Shown: in pieces, positions 6,765-18,918 of the stretch
Numbering within the stretch: position 1 is the first letter of the stretch
How the letters are laid out: every line of letters begins with the position of its first letter
Assembly: GCA_965644315.1 (NCBI GenBank)
Contig: CBFFRQ010000069.1
Span: 1,054,001-1,118,000 of the forward strand
Direction: 5' to 3'
Length of the DNA stretch: 64,000 nt
From: Caecitellus pseudoparvulus
Lineage: Eukaryota; Protista; Bigyra: Bicosoecida
Notes under the pieces: generated by a model
The model's input: only the letters and a program-made list of their open reading frames with translations
Databases searched by the model: none
What the model was told of the DNA's origin: nothing
Position numbers and translations under genes: made by a program

Positions 6765-8114
<1,350 letters not shown>

Positions 8115-8221
8115 GGTGGCAGTGGTGGCAAGTGGCGGGGGTGCACGGCGCAGCTGCAGGGCAGAAGCGGCAGTTCTGACTGTAGATTGGGTGTGAAGGG
8201 CGGGAAATGTGTTGAACGTCG

Positions 8222-10431
8222 TCAGTAGTCCACTGGCAGGCTCCAAATGTCGCGTGGGGTGGCGCGTAGCTTGCCCTCTGACGTGGTAGGCCGCGCAGGG
8301 GCAGCCTGGGGCTGCACCCGGGCGGGCGGGGTGTACAACTCTGACAATGCACTCTCATCCACGAGGGACAGCGTGCCGTCCGCTCGCTGGTACGCTGCGG
8401 GGGCTGGGGCAGGCGCCCCCTCCTCACCCGGCACCTCCGCCAAATCGTCAAACTGCAGCACCTCGCCCTGCTCAACCGCACCTCCTGGTGACTCCACGAC
8501 AGCTTCTTTGGCTTCCCCTCCCTCCTCTTCGACAAGCATGCGAGTGGGGCTCGGTGCTGCTGCTGCAGACGAGGGTTGGACTTCCGTGGAGGTTGTGCCG
8601 GTTTCTGGAGAGGCTGCCGGCGAGGGTCGCTGGGGGGCACCTTGTTTCCGGGAGGCGTGCAGGGCCTTGACGTGAGCTGTGAAAGCCTCCACATCTGCGG
8701 CTGCCCCCGTGGCGTCGCTTTTGAACCTGCATGGGGGGTGGGGCGGGCGGTGGCGGTGAATCGGCAAGGCCTGGCTGCCGCTGCTGTAACGCACAAGTGT
8801 TTGTAGCCAGTGTACCATGATGACTCCTCCACCGTGGCTGGGTCCACGCCCAGCACCTTCGCAGCCTTCTCCCCCAGCCCAACGCTGGCTGACCCGACTT
8901 TGCCCCCTGAGCTGGTGCCTGCAGCCGTGCTGGCTGAGGCGGGCTGCGCCGGCGCAGCAGGCGCTTGCCCCCGCCACGCCAACACAGCGTCCCGGAACGC
9001 AGCATGCTCTGCCTCCTCGCTAGGCCCCGGTGCCAGCAAGGGGTTGCCTGTCGCAGGAGCAGGCGCCTGGCCCAGTGTCGCGGCAAATGCCCCGCCACTG
9101 CCCTGGTTCGTGGACGCGCCGAGGGATGCCGCGAAACGCCCTCCCCCCCCTCTGCCACGTGAGCCGTCAGCACTTGCCTTGCCTGCACCGGCTGGCGCCT
9201 CAGCGGGGTTGCTCCAAGCCGTGTCTGTGCCGGCGTTGGCCACGGCGACGCCTGCTGGTGCCTCGGGTGCCGCAGTGCCGCCACGCCGCCACGCCATGAC
9301 TGCCTCTTTGAAGGCACTGCGCTCAGCCTCCTCGTCATGCTCCGCGGCGGCGGCAGCAGCGAGGGGGTTGGCAGGGGCTGCCGTCCCCTCACCAGGGCCA
9401 GCTACCGGGGCCATGCCACTGGATGCCTGCGACCAGTGCACCATTGCCGGGGCAGGGGCTGGTGCAGCCTCAGCGGCCACACCACCACCACCTGCTCTGC
9501 TGCCGCCACCACGAGGGGTGGGCGCTGCCGCAGCCTCGTCCTGCCCCGTCTGCACAGCTGTCGCGAGGCGTGCGATGGCCTTCAGCAGCAGCTTGCGGTG
9601 GGCCAGCGCCTTCACCTCCAGGTAGTCCAGGTCCTCCTTCCCCACATCCAGCAGCACTGCTCCCGACACTTCGTTCTCCGCGAAGATGCTGACGTACTTG
9701 GCCAGGCCCAGGGACGCCAGCCAGTCCCCCACATCCCCCGTGGACCACAGGTGGGCCTTGGCCGGCTGCAGGCCACCCGCCACAGTGCCTCGTGCTGAGG
9801 GTGGCGCAGGTGCTGCTGCAACTTGTCCTGCAGCGCCCAGCTCCAGCGCTGGGATGTTTGAGGCGGGGGCTGGCGCCTGGGCAGGGGGAGCGCGGTGCTG
9901 TGCGTGCTGCGTTGCGGCAGCTCGCTCCGAGGCCGCCTTGCGCAGGTTGACTTGGCGCTGGGCCCGGCGCTCAGCGGCAGGTTCGGCTTGGGCCAGCAGG
10001 TCCTTGGCGTAGGTCGTGATGGGCCCTCGAGTGCGCGCGGCAGCCCCCCACCTGGGCCCGCCACTCTTGCTGGCTCTGCGAGTGCCGAGGGGGGCGAGCT
10101 GTGGGGCAGGTGCACCGCGGGTGCGGGAGGATGCCCATGACGTACGCCTGTGCAGCTGCTCGCTCCTCGTCAACTTTTGCTTGCAGCTCCCTGCGACCAG
10201 GCGTCTCAGACGTGTGCAACGGGTGGAGGGTTTCAGGAGCGTTTCTCCCGGCGCACCTGAGCTTGGCTTCCATCTCCCACGTTTCACGCTTCAAGGCATC
10301 GCTCTCCCGCAACTTCCGCCTGTGCAATGGGTGCCGTCAATGTGGACTGCGCCTGCACAAGGCACAGCGCGCCTTCGCCCGCCTTGCAAGACCCACCTGC
10401 TGCGGCCAGGCCTGCGTGGCCCGCCAGACAT
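8222..10431 (-). CDS. ZBBX-like ciliary protein carrying a SAM domain; multi-exon
   Basis: SAM domain WSTGDVGDWLASLGLAKYVSIFAENEVSGAVLL...HRKLLLKAI. N-terminal coiled coil ETWEMEAKLRELQ...GPRWGAA. Two copies of EEAExxAFxxAVxAWR, resembling the ZBBX EExSAxxFQEALxQWR motif. Confidence 0.6.
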
Positions 10432-10571: not shown

Positions 10572-13417
10572 TCAGTCGTACAGGTCCTCCTCGTCACCGT
10601 TGTCCCCGCCCACGGCGTTGCCCCCAGCACCCCCCAGCCCGGCACTGCGCATGGTGAAGCGGCCATCTGCCGCCGTCTTGGATGCCTCCTCATCCGTGGT
10701 GATGGTCTGCGTGGCGCCGCCCTGGCGATCTGCCAGGCGCTGCCGGGCCGCCTCGTAGCTGGCCAGGTCCGCTCCTGAGATGGAGGGGCCGCAGTTGGAC
10801 CTGGCGATCTCGAAGGCGCTGGGCTGCACCGCCCACAGGGACGTGTCCTCCCCGCGCTCCATGGCGCTCAGTCGCTGCCGCACAGAGATCTTCACCGCCA
10901 TCTGCACCAGGCCGGCGATGTCGGCGCCCGAGAAGCCATCCGTCGCCTCCGCCAACTTGTCGATGTCCAGGGACGGGTGCACGCGCGTCTTGCGCAGAAC
11001 AGCACGCAAGACGCTGACACGGGCTGGGAAGTCGGGCATGGGCACGTAGATGAGCTGGGACAGGCGGCCCGCTCGCAGGAAGGCGGAGTCCAGTTGGTCA
11101 GGGCGGTTGGTGGCGCCCATCACGAACAGGTTCTTGCGCCCGCCCACGCCGTCGATCTCCGTCAGCAGCTGGTTCACGATGCGGTCGCCGACGCCCCCTG
11201 CAGAGACGGCGCCGCTGCCGCCTCGCTGCTGGGCGATGGAGTCCACCTCGTCGAAGAACAGAATGCAGGGTGACGCCTGGCGGGCTTTGTCAAAGACGTT
11301 GCGGACGTTCTGCTCTGCCTCGCCGAACCACTTGGACAGCAGCTGTGGCCCCTTGATGGCAATGAAGTTGGAGCCGCACTCGCAAGCCATGGCCTTGGCC
11401 AGCAGCGTCTTGCCCGTGCCGGGGGGGCCGTACAGGAGTGCGCCGGAGGGCGGGTCCACCCCCATCTCCGCGTAGAACTCCGGGTTGTTCACGGGCAACT
11501 CCACCATGTCCCGCAGCTCTTGCTTGACGCCTTCCAGGCCGCCAATGTCGTCGAAGGACACCTGTGGCGTCTCCACCACGACGTCCCGCACGAGGGACGG
11601 CGTGACCTTGTCCATGGCAGCGAGGAAGTCCTCGTGCCGAATGGCCAGGGCGTTCATGAACTCCTGCGGCACCTCGTCCTCGTCCAGGTCCAGCAGCGTC
11701 GGCGTGTGCTTGTGGATGGCGTGGATGGCTGCCTTCATGCACAGCGCTTGCAGGTCAGCGCCGACGTAGCCGTGGGTAACGTCCGCCACATGCCCCAAGC
11801 GCACGTCCACCAGCTTGGTCTTCTTCGTCAGGATCTCCAGGATCTCCAGACGGCCGTCTCGGGAGGGCACGGGGATGACAATTTCCGTGTCGAAGCGGCC
11901 AGCGCGGCGCAGGGCCATGTCCAGGGAGTTGGGGCGGTTCGTCGCAGCGATGACCATGAGCCCAGCGTGGGCCTTCAGCCCGTCCATGGCCGTCAGCAGC
12001 GCCGTCACCACCCGGCGCATGTTCTCGTCGCGGGTCTTATCGCGGTCAGGTGCAATGGCGTCGATTTCGTCGATGAAGATGATGGAGGGCGCGTGGGCCT
12101 CCGCCTTGCTGAAGAGGTTCTTGATCTTGCTCTCCGCCTCACCGCGGCCGCCTGAGATGATCTCGGGGCCGTTGATGACGTAGAAGGTGGCCCCACACTC
12201 GTTCGCGATGGCGCGTGCAATGAGGGTCTTGCCACAGCCGGGTGGGCCGTGCATGAGCACTCCCTTGGGCGGCTTCACACCAATGGTGGAGAACAGCTTG
12301 GGGTGCTTGAAGGGCAGCTCCACAGTCTCGCGGATGCGGTGCAGCTGCTCCCGCAGCCCGCCCACGTCCGAGTACCCAACAGCGTTCAGGTCAGCCTCGG
12401 ACTCCTCCTGGGAAATGGGCTGAGGTGCCACCTGCACAGTGGTCTGCTCGGGACCCTCCGCCGTGATGACCTTGCCGAAGGTGTCCTTGCCACCGTTGGG
12501 GGTGACAGCGGTCACCTTCACCCACACGCCGCGGCCCATGAGCACCAGGTCGCCCTTCTTGATCACGCGGGGCTGGGCGGCCTCTGCAAAGTACGGCGCG
12601 ATGACCTCCGCCTCCACGCGGGCCATGGGGATGCCGCCCAGCGTGCCCTCCACCACAGCCAGTTCGGCACGCGTCAAGTTGCGAGGGTGCGCCTGCTTCA
12701 CGACGAGGAACTCGGGCTTCTCTGGTGCGGCCAGGTTGCCCTCCCCGTCACGGTTGCCGCCGGCGCGCACAGTGACTCCCAGGAACTTCTTCGCCTCCTT
12801 CACGCCCAGGTTCTTCAGCACTGCCTCCGGCACGCCAACTTCCGTGTCAGCCAACTCGTCGTCCTCTGCAACCATGGCGATGGTCGAGCGGCGCTTCTTG
12901 CCGATGATCTCCACGTAGTCCCTGTGCACAGCGAGCGAGGAGCGTGAAGCCGAGCACCAGCTGGGCGGCCTCCGCAGCCATCGCACCCTTCGAAGACCTC
13001 CAACTTCTCGTCCATGGCATCACTGTTCAAGAACACCTCAATGGTGTCTGCATCGGGTTTTCGCACGACAGCTGAGAAGGGAGGGCAGGGACGGCGACAT
13101 GTGCAGTAACTGGATCGGCTCGCTGAGTGGAGCCTGCGTTTCGTTCGCGGAGCGAGTCTCAACACGCCAACCGGCGCCGCCTGCGAGAGGCGCCGGCAGC
13201 CCCCCCCCCTACATGCTGGGGTGCCAAGGTACACTCCTCTTGCGCTGTGCCCGGTTCGGCGTGCACAGCCGGCAGGCGCTGGGACTGGCAGGCGGCAGTT
13301 GCCCGAGGCACCCTGTCAGCCCTCTGCACTTCCGCATGTCCACCACGCCAACAGCAGCAGGCACGTACTGAAGCGACCAGGGATCTCCACGCTGGGAGCA
13401 TCACCTGAGGCAGCCAT
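10572..13417 (-). CDS. CDC48: CDC48/p97 (VCP) family AAA+ ATPase, divergent paralogue; 2 introns near the 5' end
   Basis: N-domain (MDEKLEVFEG|DYVEIIGKKRR), D1 GPPGCGKT and IFIDEID, D2 GPPGTGKT and LFFDEVD, SRH ATNRP...LRAGRL, C-terminal HbYX-like EDLYD. Start MAASGDAPSVEIPGRF at 13417. Confidence 0.9.
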
Positions 13418-13853: not shown

Positions 13854-15531
13854 ATGGCCGCTGAGCAGAGCACTAAGGTACGCCAGCCGCCCTCGCTGTG
13901 ACCGCCCTCCCCCCACTGCATGCATGGCCAAGTGTGCATTGTGTTCACAGGACCAGGAGGCTGCCCTCCTGGACTACGACGAGGATGAGGAGGCCGACAA
14001 GGGGCCTGAGGAGGCCAAGGACACGAAGTGCGTTTCCGGCCGGCGCAAGCTGGGGCAGTCTGCGCCGGCAGTCACGCGCAGACTGCCGGCGCCGTGCCAC
14101 CGCCACAGTGCCACTCCTTGACATGCCATGGTCCCCAACTTGACTGGTGGGCAGTGAACTGCAAGGATGTGTGCGAGGCGTGTGGAGGTCTGGGCTGCGG
14201 CTCGGCGACGCACGGCTGACACCCCCGCACACCACCGCGCTCGGCTCACAGGGGTGACTACATCGGCGTGAACAGCTCCAGCTTCCGGGACTTCCTGCTG
14301 AAGCCCGAGATCATGCGCTCCATCGTGGACTGCGGCTTCGAGCACCCCTCTCAGGGTGAGTTCTGCGCGCGGTCTGTGGCGTGGTGGCACACACCTCAAA
14401 TCCGCACTGCCGGGCACGCCTCTCCCCTGCGCAGTGCAGCACGAGGCCATCCCCCAGGCCCTCGTGGGCATGGACGTCCTGTGCCAAGCCAAGTCCGGCA
14501 TGGGCAAGACAGCAGTCTTCGTCCTGACCACGCTGAACGTCGTGGAGCCCCAGGACGACGCCGTGCAGGTGGTGGTGCTGTCCCACACCCGTGAGCTGGC
14601 GTACCAGATCGGCAAGGAGTACGAGCGCTTCTCCAAGTACCTGCCCGAAGTGAAGACTGTCGTGGTGTACGGCGGCGTGAAGCGCACGCAGCATGCTGCG
14701 GCGTTGAAGGAGACCAAGCCCTCCATCCTCGTCGGCACGCCTGGCCGTGTCATCGACCTCATCGAGCACAAGGAGCTGGACCTGTCCAAGGTCAAGTACT
14801 TCGTCGTGGACGAGTGCGACAAGATGCTGGAGTCCATGGACATGCGCCGCCAGGTGCAGAAGGTGTTCCTGGAGACGCCCGTGCAGAAGCAGGTGATGAT
14901 GTACAGCGCGACGCTGTCCACAGACGTCCGGGGTGTCTGCCGCAAGTTCATGAACGACCCCCTGGAGATCTTCATCGAGGACGAGCGCAAGCTGACCCTG
15001 CACGGCCTCGTGCAGTACTTCGCCAAGTTGAAGCCGGAGGAGAAGAACTTGAAGCTGACCAACCTGCTTGATGCACTCGACTTCAACCAGGTGGTCATCT
15101 TCGTCTCCACCGCCGCCCGCGCCCGGGAGCTGGACCGCCTGCTGAAGGACTGCAACTTCCCCTCCATCCACATCCACGGCGGCATGCGCCAGGAGGACCG
15201 CATCAAGCAGTACAACGCCTTCCGCACCAACCAGGCCCGCATCCTGGTGTCCACCAACCTCTTCGGCCGCGGCATTGACATCGAGCGTGTCAACATCGTC
15301 ATCAACTACGACTTCCCCTCCCAGGAGGACAAGTCTGGGGAGGCCGCCTCGGACCAGTACCTGCACCGCGTCGGGCGTGCAGGGCGCTTCGGCACCAAGG
15401 GCCTCGCCATCAGCTTCGTCTCCACCCCCGAGGACGAGAAGGCGCTGGAGGAGGTGCAGAGCCGCTTCGAGGTCAAGGTGCCTGAGCTGCCCGACAAGAT
15501 CGACACTGACGCCTACATGAAGCAGTACTGA
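13854..15531 (+). CDS. DDX39B: DECD-box RNA helicase UAP56/Sub2; 3 introns
   Basis: [51 protein letters not shown] and [13 protein letters not shown]. Confidence 0.96.
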
Positions 15532-15611: not shown

Positions 15612-16201
15612 TCACTCAGTGTAGCACGCGAACAGCATGGCGCTGCACCACAGGGACTCCTGCGAGACAGCGCACGGAGCGGCAGGGTGTGTGCCTCGCG
15701 CATCAGCAAGCCCCTTCGCCGGCGCCTTACATTCTTGAAGCTGTAGGAGCTGTAGTTGTCATTGTCGGTGTCCCACAGGCACCTGCTGGCGACGCGCACT
15801 CCCTGCTTCTTCACTTCCCCCAGGGTAACCTGCACGACGTACTTGTACCGGCTCAGCGCCAAGTCTGGCGCAGAGAGGGGGGAGCGGGGTGCCAGCAGGA
15901 AACGCCAGCAGCACCAGGCGCACGCCCCGCCGCACCTTTGCAGGCTTCCTTGATGCGCTGCGTGATTTCCACCGTCCACCTCGTTTCATCTTCGTTGTTC
16001 CAAACCTTGTCTGTCAGCGACTCGTCCACGACAGCCTTGCAGATGGCGTCCCCGACACTTTTGCGAAACCTGCGCCGTTGAGAAATGTCGTGGACAGCGC
16101 TGCCACCCTGCACGCTGGGCCTCCACGCACTTCCCGTCAGGGGCTGGATCTGTGCGGTACGTTGGCTGCACCGTCACCATGCCCTCCTCCTCGTATGCCA
16201 T
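15612..16201 (-). CDS. Tctex1-domain dynein light chain (TCTEX1D2/DYNLT2B-like); multi-exon
   Basis: PTYRTDP, RYKYVVQVTLGE, QGVRVASRCLWDTDNDNY and C-terminal LWCSAMLFACYTE. Confidence 0.88.
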
Positions 16202-16423
16202 GGTGAAAGTCTGCCGCCTCGGACTGTGCGTCGGCCGGCCCCTGGCGCTGCAGTGCGCTGGCGCAGGCTGGCGTTCCCCCGGGCGCAGAGCCCCACTGCT
16301 GAGCACAGGCGGCGCACAAACACGTCCAAAGACAGCCTTGTGGCGTGTCTTGGCAGTGCGCTGTGCGGAAGTGATGAATTGGTGTGCTAGGATCGAAGTG
16401 CCGCGAGGGGCGGCTGGAGCTGC

Positions 16424-18793
16424 TCAAATGAGCTCAGCGTTCAGGTTGTCCAGGATGATGCCCTTCTTCAGCAGCGTGAGGTCATCCCCCCGCACCTGCA
16501 AGGCGGGCACGTCCCCTCGCTGCAGCTCCTCCAGCCACTTGCAGGCATAGCGCTGGCTCAGTCCCAGCACGCCGCCGTTGATGACGTAGGTGGAGATGGG
16601 GCCGGTGTCCTCGCCTGCCTCGCTGGCCTGCACTGCCTCCACCACCTCCTGGCGCCACTTGGAGCGCACGGCGCCCTCTGATTCAGCCAGCAGCGCCAGC
16701 GTCTTGTCGCACACCGTCTTTGCCTGCAGCTGCTGCTCCAGCACCCGCCCAGCAAGCCCCGCCTGCTGCACAGTCACCTCCTCCGTATCCGGCACCAACC
16801 TGCGAGCTGAATGGTCTTGCAGGTGCTGTGGCAGGGCCAACAGCTCTCGGGGGATGCGCCCGCGGACCATGAGGTTGAAGGGGACGTAGGGGGGGCAAAA
16901 GCGCTCCCTCACGTGGGCGTACAGGGCTGCCAGGGTCGTGCTCAAGTTCACGATGAGCGTCGCGGTGGGCGGCTGTGCGGGGTTGTGCAGGGGATTGAAC
17001 AAGTCCACGCGCACTTTCCCCGCGGGGGCTCCTTCATCAAAAGGCTGTACCCGCTCACCTGCAGCCGCCGACAGCGCCACGGCATCTGCCGCCCGGCGCT
17101 GCTCCGAACGCCACGCAGTGAAGGCGGCGCGGTCTGCCTCGTGTCGAGCTGCCGCCTTGGCTGCAGCACCGCGCAGATCGCTCGGATCGGCAGCAGCGCC
17201 AGGGGCAGCCGCGTCGTGTTTGCCAGCCTCGGGGCCCCAGCGCCCTGGCTGGCTGCTGTGCCTGGACAGGGCAGGGTTTGCTGAAGGCAAGCGAGAGAGG
17301 GGGACGCCGCCGGCATGGTCAACCGGGGAGCCCTGTGACGTCCCCGTGGAGGCCTGGTGTGTCAGGGGTGGCGCGGGGGGGAGAGCTGAGACATCTGCTG
17401 TGGAGATGAGGGCGGCGTCCACATCCAAGTCTGTGGCGATGGGCTTGTCGAACTTGATGCCCAGGTCCACCCAGTGCGAGCCGACCCAGGGACACACCGC
17501 CGCAGCCTCGGGTGTGACAGATGTGATGAGGAAGTGCTGTGTGTCACTGAACACCTGCACGGGGATGGTCAGCCCAGGTTGCAGAGTCGTGTAGTTTTGC
17601 AGGGCAGCCTGCAGCACCATGCTGTGGTCCACCTCCAGGGCTGCGAAAGACGACGACACCGCCTGCAGCTTCAGGGCAATGGCTCGAGGCAGCTCCACGG
17701 GCTTCAGCTGCACCTCCATGCACTGCGGCACGTGCAGCTGCGCCCACAGCCAGTCCGGGAGGATGGCCATGTTCTCTTCTGGCGCAGAGAAGGACGCGCC
17801 GCAGTACACGCGGACGCCAGACGGAGCAGTCACCTCAAATGTGAGTGCCTGGGTGCCTAGGATGGTGTCGTCGGTCAGGCGCTGCAGAATGCTGCTGTGC
17901 AGCTCGATCTTGTCCGAGTGCTCGAAGCGGTCCGGGAAGCTGTCCATCACGCCCGCCATCATGGCAAAGGTGCGGGACATGGCGATGAAGGACCGGTCGG
18001 TAGTCATGCTAGAAATCTTGGGCATGGCCACACGCCGAAGCAGGCGCGCCCTCGCCAGCTCGTGGGCGCTGGAGGGGTACTCGGAGCTGGTGCTCCAGCG
18101 CAGCTGTGGGCTGCACTGGGCGATGTGTGCGCGCAGCCAGGACAGGAGCTGCACCATGGTGAACCTTGATGACCAGCCTTCTGGGAACAGCACAGGCATG
18201 GCGGGAGCCCCCATGTCGAACCCGCCTGTGCAGGGTTGAAAGATCGGGCGCACCACTCGCAGCACCGGCGGGGCCGCAGGGTAGTCATCTGGGAAGGTCG
18301 CCTGCACCTCCACAAGCTCATGGGCTCCCTGCATGTGGCCAGCATGTCGTTTGAGCGCGTGGTCCATCTGCAACACGGTGCGAGGGGTCATGGTGTGGCA
18401 AGGGCAAGTCCCTGTGCGAAGGCGTGGTGGCGGCGAAACGCTGCTTGGCACACGCACCGACTGCCCTGCTTCGCAGTCCAGGGCAAAGTTCTGCAGGCCT
18501 ATCACCCACACAGAGGAGCTCCGACTAGATTCCCTCACTCGCACGCCGCCAATGCCCACCAGGCGGGACGCCTGCAGAAGGCTCAGCTCGGCCGCCACTC
18601 GTGGCGTGTGCTCTGTCGTTGCCCGCACTTGCTCAGCAGCAGCGGCCTCTGCATCGCCCTCGGAGTCCTCCCCTTCGTCCATGGCCTGGCTACCATACCC
18701 TACAGCCCCCGATTCATCTTTCCCGTCATCGGATGAGTCGGGAAGGTCGTACTCGTACCCGTCCTCACTCAGGAAATAGTCACTGCTGGCCAT
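16424..18793 (-). CDS. Fusion protein: UBE2Q-like pseudo-E2 domain + UFD1 (UT3) domain + UBX-like domain
   Basis: E2 fold TFPDDYPAAPPVLRVVRP...GAPAMPVLFPEGWSS. UFD1 DKIELHSSIL...YCG..F.A.E..AILPDWL...VLQAALQNYTTL...DLGIKFDKP. UBX-like TTLAALYAHV...FNL...IPR...TVQQAGL. Two short in-frame introns are likely near the 5' end. Confidence 0.8.
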   Translation of the reverse strand: MASSDYFLSEDGYEYDLPDSSDDGKDESGAVGYGSQAMDEGEDSEGDAEAAAAEQVRATTEHTPRVAAELSLLQASRLVGIGGVRVRESSRSSSVWVIGLQNFALDCEAGQSVRVPSSVSPPPRLRTGTCPCHTMTPRTVLQMDHALKRHAGHMQGAHELVEVQATFPDDYPAAPPVLRVVRPIFQPCTGGFDMGAPAMPVLFPEGWSSRFTMVQLLSWLRAHIAQCSPQLRWSTSSEYPSSAHELARARLLRRVAMPKISSMTTDRSFIAMSRTFAMMAGVMDSFPDRFEHSDKIELHSSILQRLTDDTILGTQALTFEVTAPSGVRVYCGASFSAPEENMAILPDWLWAQLHVPQCMEVQLKPVELPRAIALKLQAVSSSFAALEVDHSMVLQAALQNYTTLQPGLTIPVQVFSDTQHFLITSVTPEAAAVCPWVGSHWVDLGIKFDKPIATDLDVDAALISTADVSALPPAPPLTHQASTGTSQGSPVDHAGGVPLSRLPSANPALSRHSSQPGRWGPEAGKHDAAAPGAAADPSDLRGAAAKAAARHEADRAAFTAWRSEQRRAADAVALSAAAGERVQPFDEGAPAGKVRVDLFNPLHNPAQPPTATLIVNLSTTLAALYAHVRERFCPPYVPFNLMVRGRIPRELLALPQHLQDHSARRLVPDTEEVTVQQAGLAGRVLEQQLQAKTVCDKTLALLAESEGAVRSKWRQEVVEAVQASEAGEDTGPISTYVINGGVLGLSQRYACKWLEELQRGDVPALQVRGDDLTLLKKGIILDNLNAELI

Positions 18794-18918
18794 GCTGGAG
18801 TGCAGCGCTTGCCACGGAGCCCACGGCTGCGCTGGCGCCTCCCAGACACGACTGTGCGCAAGGGGAATGCTGCTGCCTCATGCAGTGTTGTTGACCTGGT
18901 GCGATGACATGCGTTGAA

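Follow-up and report, generated by a model that had tools for sequence, protein, structure and literature searches.

A single-chain fusion of a UBE2Q-type E2 fold lacking its catalytic cysteine, a UFD1 UT3 domain and a UBX-like domain in Caecitellus pseudoparvulus: a candidate Cdc48 cofactor

We analyzed a 64,000-nt stretch of the genome of the bicosoecid protist Caecitellus pseudoparvulus (GenBank assembly GCA_965644315.1, contig CBFFRQ010000069.1, positions 1,054,001 to 1,118,000 of the forward strand; hereafter the window) and in it one minus-strand gene, the E2-UFD1 gene, which encodes in one chain a UBE2Q-type ubiquitin-conjugating (E2) fold, the UT3 domain of UFD1 and a UBX-like domain. 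Cofactors of Cdc48/p97 are normally separate proteins, with Ufd1-Npl4 recognizing ubiquitin, UBX proteins docking onto Cdc48 and E2, E3 or E4 enzymes building chains. The most economical reading of the gene, which we lean towards as somewhat likelier true than false, is a composite Cdc48 cofactor of a new type, linked to ubiquitin and lacking catalytic activity. The 759-residue, cytosolic protein belongs to a widespread and uncharacterized family of protist proteins, in whose core a UBE2Q-type E2 fold is joined directly to a UFD1 UT3 domain. In the subfamily considered here, the core is followed by a linker, then by a long helix that leads to a UBX-type beta-grasp, and lastly by a small C-terminal module, and the Caecitellus protein stands at the divergent, degenerate end of the family.

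The gene occupies an uninterrupted minus-strand open reading frame (ORF) of 789 codons in the ORF list (feature coordinates are collected in Table 1; residues are numbered along this frame). A reading made previously from the letters and translations (hereafter the sequence-only reading) had described a single frame carrying three modules. Frame and modules are real, but the frame is not coding throughout, for a 90-nt intron lies within the E2 module. The intron was suggested by the DNA itself and confirmed with contigs from marine metatranscriptome runs aligned onto positions 16300-18900: three runs have contigs with the splice joint 18367/18458, namely X4 and X7 (both recorded as RNA-Seq) and X1, and the 2,402-nt X1 contig covers 16364-18855 with the intron as its sole gap. 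Since the X1 contig spans the gene end to end, all modules are on one mRNA, as the sequence-only reading had supposed, and since the intron is removed in RNA, the mature protein has 759 residues. Our full-length AlphaFold model was built from the unspliced ORF, with an alignment of 150 relatives, and thus includes the 30 intron-coded residues, which correspond to a low-confidence loop (residues 110-134, pLDDT <50). Over exon 1 the model has pLDDT <50 at residues 1-43, followed by a helix (46-75) and strands (81-88 and 94-100). In the ortholog P0162 the same position is occupied by an intron of 60 nt, GTGAGT..CAG (L013 10310-10369). Both introns are in-frame and free of stops, so that prokaryote-style gene callers read through them, and the database proteins P0001 and P0162 hold intron-coded residues. 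The E2-UFD1 gene is single-copy within the 30.6-Mb genome, which also contains canonical UFD1 genes, a canonical CDC48 and four ordinary UBX proteins, together with a weaker match to NPL4 (33 bits, cut-off 24 bits).

The N-terminal module was identified as a UBE2Q-like E2, in agreement with the sequence-only reading, and all of the motifs named there are present (FPDDYP 167-172, RVVRP 179-183, QPCTGG 186-191, GAPAMPVL 195-202 and GWSS 206-209). A phmmer search against PDB sequences aligned residues 156-239 with UBE2Q1 (2qgx, E 2.9e-5) and UBE2Q2 (1zuo, E 6e-5). By exhaustive structure comparison (VIA-align), the model of residues 58-254 matched human UBE2Q2 (1zuo) with Z 20.1 and a root-mean-square deviation (rmsd) of 2.1 A, 156 of 162 residues being superposed; E2s other than UBE2Q scored Z <=12.6 and the UEV domain of Tsg101 scored 10.2. 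The Pfam family UQ_con is sub-threshold in this protein (19.1 bits versus 27, E 1e-3) and above its cut-off in the ortholog P0006 (29.3 bits). UBE2Q1, UBE2Q2 and UBE2QL1 are closest in both sequence and structure and have in common with the Caecitellus domain FPxxYPxxPP...R..RP, the GW and the absent HPN; a motif scan of this protein found no HPN motif, and UBE2Q-family E2s are without the HPN triad (PMC10971424). Unlike them, the domain has no RWD-type N-terminal extension, is fused to UFD1 and has Ala in place of the catalytic Cys. This last replacement, already proposed from the sequence, was borne out by the residue alignment of GAPAMPVL with GAICMELL of UBE2Q1/Q2, in which Ala198 stands opposite the Cys; the column is Ala or Met throughout the clade of the Caecitellus gene, and the E2 is predicted to be catalytically dead. 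Cys188, within QPCTGG, was considered as a substitute catalytic residue and rejected because it is not conserved even among orthologs, the position being H, F, D or Y in relatives.

The second module had been read as a UFD1 UT3 domain, and Pfam, sequence and structure comparisons all support this assignment. UFD1_N1 passes its cut-off of 29 bits with 31.7, and UFD1_N2 stays below its own (25.7 versus 37). Human UFD1 (2yuj) was matched by phmmer against PDB sequences at E 4.7e-5, and residues 261-450 of the model match its UT3 domain with Z 20.1 and rmsd 2.6 A over 177 residues (Foldseek was also run). Confidence is high across both modules, with pLDDT >90 over residues 140-450 of the full-length model. 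The fold is thus that of UFD1 in Ufd1-Npl4, but the E2 fold is fused N-terminal of it and the UBX-like domain C-terminal, and separate canonical UFD1 genes exist in the same genome. UFD1 similarity stops at residue 452, and the UT6 region, with its SHP boxes (F.G.G..L) and its Npl4-binding site, is absent from the protein. Npl4 binding in the canonical Ufd1 manner is therefore impossible. Additionally, SHP, VIM, VBM and UIM motifs were all missing in the motif scan of the protein, and with UT6 absent as well, any contact to Cdc48 would need the UBX-like domain.

The third module is rightly called UBX-type as far as fold and remote homology go, judging from profile comparisons and a predicted structure. 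Iterative searches of relatives yielded two conserved C-terminal blocks, at about residues 540-700 and 700-789. With the family profile of the first block, the UBX domains of p47, Shp1 and p37 were the top matches among PDB sequences (E 0.016-0.06; p47 0.016), and hhalign against a profile of genuine UBX domains, taken from family members and from the UBX proteins of the same genome, gave 91.5% probability (E 8.5e-7). A separate model of residues 530-789 (pLDDT 83.9, pTM 0.73) shows, in order, a helix of 42 residues, a beta-grasp and a small domain made of a hairpin and helices. The fold search with the beta-grasp returned the UBX domain of plant PUX5 as best match (Z 11.7, rmsd 2.0 A over 82 residues), then the UBX domains of FAF1, UBXN4, Shp1, UBXD7, p47 and p37 (Z 8.8-9.6), ahead of generic ubiquitin-like (Ubl) domains, and these matches include the N-terminal extension typical of UBX. 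Foldseek likewise gave a UBX match (E 1.5e-4), and UBX proteins made up eight of the ten nearest cluster types in the ESM Atlas; an ESM Atlas feature search with the whole protein was blank. The motifs on which the sequence-only reading had placed its UBX-like domain are found at IPR 647-649, within an insertion of some 17 residues (about 645-661) that is specific to the clade, and at TVQQAGL 674-680. Its assignment of a UBX-like beta-grasp thus stands for the fold, the profile-profile match and these positions, but the Pfam UBX family does not match and IPR is not conserved.

The architecture had been regarded as unusual and uncharacterized. The latter holds, as the named members that we looked up carry only hypothetical or generic names, and in the literature searched we found no description of UFD1 fused to UBE2Q, UQ_con or another E2-like domain or to UBX, which does not rule out that one has been published. 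Yet the architecture is no isolated case. An exhaustive HMMER search (309 hits) uncovered a family of which word-based searches had returned close orthologs only, and at least 50 cluster representatives, many of 500-1,000 residues, align over the E2-like and UFD1 domains in one stretch. The sources are Heterolobosea, Euglenida, stramenopiles, marine metagenomes and MMETSP transcripts, and those with names include Platysulcus tardus, Percolomonas cosmopolitus, Willaertia magna, Naegleria lovaniensis, Acrasis kona and Entosiphon sulcatum. Three orthologs at about 50% identity (P0006, P0162 and P0163) have the full architecture of the Caecitellus protein. More distant relatives, at 20-33% identity, have the E2-like and UT3 core in common with it (Willaertia KAL9654342.1, Naegleria lovaniensis C9374_002358, Percolomonas A0A7S1KQC0, Platysulcus EP00753_P007971 and Entosiphon EP01012_P005153) and several also have a UBX domain, but some bear the catalytic Cys and their tails differ, with XAF1/TRAFD1-type zinc fingers, UBA, PUB, ankyrin, WWE or GYF domains. 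When 40 members were scanned with Pfam, UFD1 was found in 37, UQ_con in 16 (E <1e-3), UBX in four, UBA_4 in five and XAF1-type zinc fingers in six, with PUB, WWE, GYF and ankyrin in one or two each. Members with a Pfam-significant UBX include Willaertia magna KAL9654342.1, a Naegleria lovaniensis protein, an Entosiphon transcript and an MMETSP transcript; in the Willaertia protein the E2 spans residues 264-389, UFD1 449-609 and UBX, above the Pfam cut-off, 667-753. Some members also have UBA, PUB or NZF/RanBP2 fingers, which are typical accessory modules of the Cdc48 and ubiquitin systems. The catalytic Cys is kept in 13 of the 50 representatives, and these fall on either side of the midpoint root of a FastTree tree; from this distribution, the family ancestor probably had an active E2 and the Cys was lost repeatedly. 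Members with Cys in this column include P0018, P0020 and P0063, and the Willaertia protein (P0033) has Ala.

Given this composition, we propose the following mechanism. The UBX-like domain, borne on the preceding helix, would dock onto the N-domain of the Cdc48/p97 hexamer and so put the UT3 domain above the ring, where UT3 would engage the ubiquitin of the substrate. The E2 fold, with Ala for Cys and unable to form a thioester, may serve as a non-catalytic surface for ubiquitin or a partner, packed beside UT3. The protein would thus be a one-chain form of what elsewhere are separate proteins, the helix and UBX of FAF1/FAF2 and the UT3 of UFD1. UT3 binds the proximal ubiquitin and the initiator ubiquitin, which is unfolded, and the long helix and UBX of FAF1/FAF2 position UFD1-UT3 on p97 (bioRxiv 10.64898/2026.03.13.711538). 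FAF1/FAF2-type (UBA-UBX) cofactors likewise run from a long helix into a UBX beta-grasp on the C-terminal side, with the ubiquitin-recognition module N-terminal; they differ in that the latter is UBA/UAS and not UT3 in cis, in that no extra C-terminal module follows, and in HUE and LPPEP motifs that we did not recognize in the Caecitellus protein. UBE2QL1 acts with VCP in lysophagy (PMC11172259), a cooperation that makes an E2 partner plausible. In animals the link between UBE2Q-type enzymes and Cdc48 is seen only indirectly, in this example; that a single chain joins a UBE2Q-type E2, a UFD1 domain and UBX suggests that the two are functionally linked in a direct way. The family would also provide a natural single-chain system for UT3 function without Npl4 and, through repeated loss of the catalytic Cys, natural pairs of active and inactive forms.

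Several observations weigh against the cofactor reading. Human UFD1 requires L53, E84, K139, E143 and D186 for K48-ubiquitin recognition (bioRxiv 10.64898/2026.03.13.711538). The equivalents of L53 (L303) and D186 (D443) are retained in the Caecitellus UT3 domain, but those of the other three are altered (E84 to S334, K139 to S391, E143 to Q395); among the 50 family representatives, these columns hold E/D in 26, K/R in 26 and E in 25. Pfam UBX (PF00789) gave no match to the protein even at E 10 and none in the genome scan at E <=0.1. The beta1 Arg of UBX, which relatives have, is Asp in this clade (KVRVDLF), and the FPR loop reads IPR here and APV, AST and LPA in the three orthologs and is absent from the sister clade, so that the p97-contact signature of UBX (the beta1 Arg and the FPR loop between beta3 and beta4), a further difference from FAF1/FAF2, is not retained. 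Furthermore, no UBX adaptor alone is reported to have supported p97 unfolding, and UT3 normally works with Npl4 (bioRxiv 10.64898/2026.03.13.711538), so that a stand-alone loader is not a given. The loss of these hallmark residues lowers our confidence in the cofactor reading for this clade; since the contact residues of both UT3 and UBX are altered, partner specificity may have shifted, possibly to a divergent CDC48 paralog encoded nearby. The sequence-only reading had gone as far as a self-contained, possibly Npl4-independent, substrate-recruiting cofactor. The absence of UT6 agrees with this, but the altered K48-ubiquitin residues and the lost UBX signature do not, and such a cofactor would be a reasonable model for the family while it is unproven for this protein. 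A wider joint claim is, taken as a whole, unlikely: that the family represents an old Npl4-independent route of Cdc48 loading, in which a FAF1-like helix and UBX place UT3 over the ring in cis, the UBE2Q-type domain extends the chain where it bears the Cys or holds it where it does not, and the contacts are here rewired for the nearby CDC48 paralog.

The same losses at the UBX signature, together with the blank Pfam result, could instead mean that the protein is a scaffold of the ubiquitin system that does not dock onto Cdc48. The UBX-like domain would then be a generic Ubl, for example a ligand of the proteasome or of a receptor as in the Rad23/Dsk2 shuttles, or an intramolecular module, while the E2-like and UT3 domains would bind ubiquitylated cargo or an E3. 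Generic Ubl domains indeed score only 2-3 Z units below UBX in the fold comparison (Ddi2 UBL, 9.0). However, p97-binding UBX domains come out consistently best in both fold and profile, down to the N-terminal extension, and other family members have bona fide UBX, PUB and UBA_4 domains. We consider this scaffold doubtful, while giving it real weight.

Another reading would make the protein a dedicated adaptor of the divergent CDC48 paralog, the two forming a private segregase pair. The paralog ORF (10572-12986, minus strand) lies 3.4 kb from the E2-UFD1 gene and matches p97 from residue 112 with E 1e-208. It shares 45% identity with the genome's canonical CDC48 (G000:C13) and has both Walker A motifs intact; the N-domain has diverged and an intron divides it, with its start (…IEVFLNSDAMDEKLEVFEG) in another frame, in an upstream exon near 13050-13140. 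Altered UBX contacts could match such an altered N-domain. Moreover, the block of E2-UFD1, Tctex-1, DEAD-box and CDC48-like genes is retained in two orthologous metagenomic contigs, in which a U-box gene stands beside the CDC48-like gene. Against this, two unrelated genes intervene, and in eukaryotes the order of genes says little about function. The two relatives are also collinear further out, over SAM and fumarate-reductase genes, which makes the block look like plain synteny, and more distant family members have no CDC48 gene beside them. The adjacency is ordinary synteny of near relatives and as a hint of pairing weak at best, and we regard a private pair as improbable.

The preserved E2 fold could also point to a role in chain editing. 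Inactive E2 variants are established as chain-positioning modules, and a Cys-less E2 could team up with an active E2 or E3, in the manner of Mms2/Uev1 and Ubc13, so that chains on UT3-held substrates are shaped or extended, which would make the protein an E4-like editor and not a loader. UEV proteins (Mms2/Uev1, Tsg101) likewise have an E2 fold without the catalytic Cys, presumably for binding, but the domain here comes from the UBE2Q branch and would have lost its Cys independently. The fold is very well conserved and confidently modeled, and as about a quarter of the representatives keep the Cys, the lineage would have begun as an enzyme. On the other hand, the UBX-like domain and the C-terminal module are left unexplained, and no UBE2Q-type E2 is known to work with UEV-type partners. 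Such an activity is compatible with the cofactor reading rather than exclusive of it; as an explanation in its own right we rate it a little lower still than the private pair.

The possibility of an annotation or assembly artefact, in which separate genes are read through, or of a decaying, functionless relic has in its favor that hallmark residues are lost in every module and that long stop-free frames are common in a genome of 65% GC (64-66% around the ORF), but it is very improbable, a fusion artefact being ruled out by the spliced 2.4-kb RNA contig running end to end with its splice joint in three runs, by the full-length architecture shared among the three orthologs and by the intron position kept in P0162, the one ortholog with its DNA read, while the domains are confidently folded in the models. 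We also considered, because of the extra CDC48 in the genome, a plastid SELMA-type Ufd1/Cdc48 pair, and rejected it since the N-terminus, by inspection only, is acidic and disordered and has no signal-peptide-like hydrophobic stretch.

Table 1. Features of the E2-UFD1 gene (positions in the window; residues along the 789-codon frame)
Feature	Positions	Strand	Evidence
Entire coding region, one intron and stop codon included	16424..18793	-	ORF list; X1 RNA contig
Coding exon 1, aa 1-112: N-terminus acidic and disordered (1-45), E2 helix 1 and first strands after it	18458..18793	-	DNA reading, RNA contigs, model
Intron, 90 nt, GTGCGT...TTGCAG, in-frame, without stops, ORF codons 113-142, within E2 module	18368..18457	-	RNA contigs
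Coding exon 2, aa 143-789 and stop	16424..18367	-	ORF list, RNA contigs
UBE2Q-type E2 (UBC) fold, aa 46-254, split by intron, predicted inactive	18032..18658	-	phmmer, Pfam, structure comparison
Ala198 codon, catalytic Cys position of UBE2Q1/Q2	18200..18202	-	Residue alignment, family column
UFD1 UT3 domain (Nn double-psi barrel and Nc), aa 261-450	17444..18013	-	Pfam, phmmer, structure comparison
Disordered Pro/Ala/Ser-rich linker, aa 451-536	17186..17443	-	pLDDT <50 at residues 466-534
Long helix, aa 537-578, family consensus NAxFAxWRxEQ, runs into UBX-like domain	17060..17185	-	Model H8-49, pLDDT 85-91
UBX-like beta-grasp, aa 585-692	16718..17041	-	Fold and profile comparisons
Conserved C-terminal module, aa 694-789: hairpin and helices, WLEEL, conserved C-terminal helix	16427..16714	-	Alignments, model
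Probable 3' UTR	16364..16423	-	RNA contig ends, two runs

The C-terminal module had no consistent match to Pfam or to PDB sequences and none in the ESM Atlas. In relatives, among them P0007 (residues 716-805), it carries the pattern CDxC...LCxxHxC, which looks like a zinc knuckle; in the Caecitellus protein the ligands are degenerate (CDK..., LSQRYAC), and its clade has lost most of them. In a sister clade (P0008, P0010, P0049, P0011 and P0012), an insertion of one or two RanBP2/NZF-type fingers (W/Y-x-C-x2-C-T-x-x-N...C-x2-C) separates the CDxC knuckle from the remainder of the module, and these fingers resemble the ubiquitin-binding finger of Npl4. At the other end of the protein, P0162 has at about residues 12-32 a UIM-like LxxAxxxS after an acidic run (…DDESAELQAQLIQAVAASS…), a motif that is missing from the Caecitellus protein.

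Among the neighboring genes, the U-box gene lies directly downstream of the CDC48 paralog at 19952-21061 in L013 and 15508-16812 in L015, and its place in the window is taken by a SAM-domain gene (7675-10287). Between the CDC48 paralog and the E2-UFD1 gene are a UAP56/Sub2-like DEAD-box helicase ORF (14356-15531, plus strand), which is without the N-terminal 70 or so residues, and a partial ORF for a Tctex-1 dynein light chain (15853-16113, minus strand); both presumably have further small exons. Past the 3' end of the E2-UFD1 gene, two RNA contigs from two runs terminate at 16364 and 16365, 10-16 nt beyond an AATTCA (16375-16380), which is only suggestive of a poly(A) site. In the HMMER search, the stramenopile Platysulcus is the second-best match overall and the best one with an organism name. 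Finally, P0002 (NCBI CAE7303604.1), filed as a partial protein of 'Symbiodinium sp. KB8', is a 274-residue fragment identical to the C-terminus described here, and on the basis of GC content and relatives it probably stems from a contaminating protist in that assembly.

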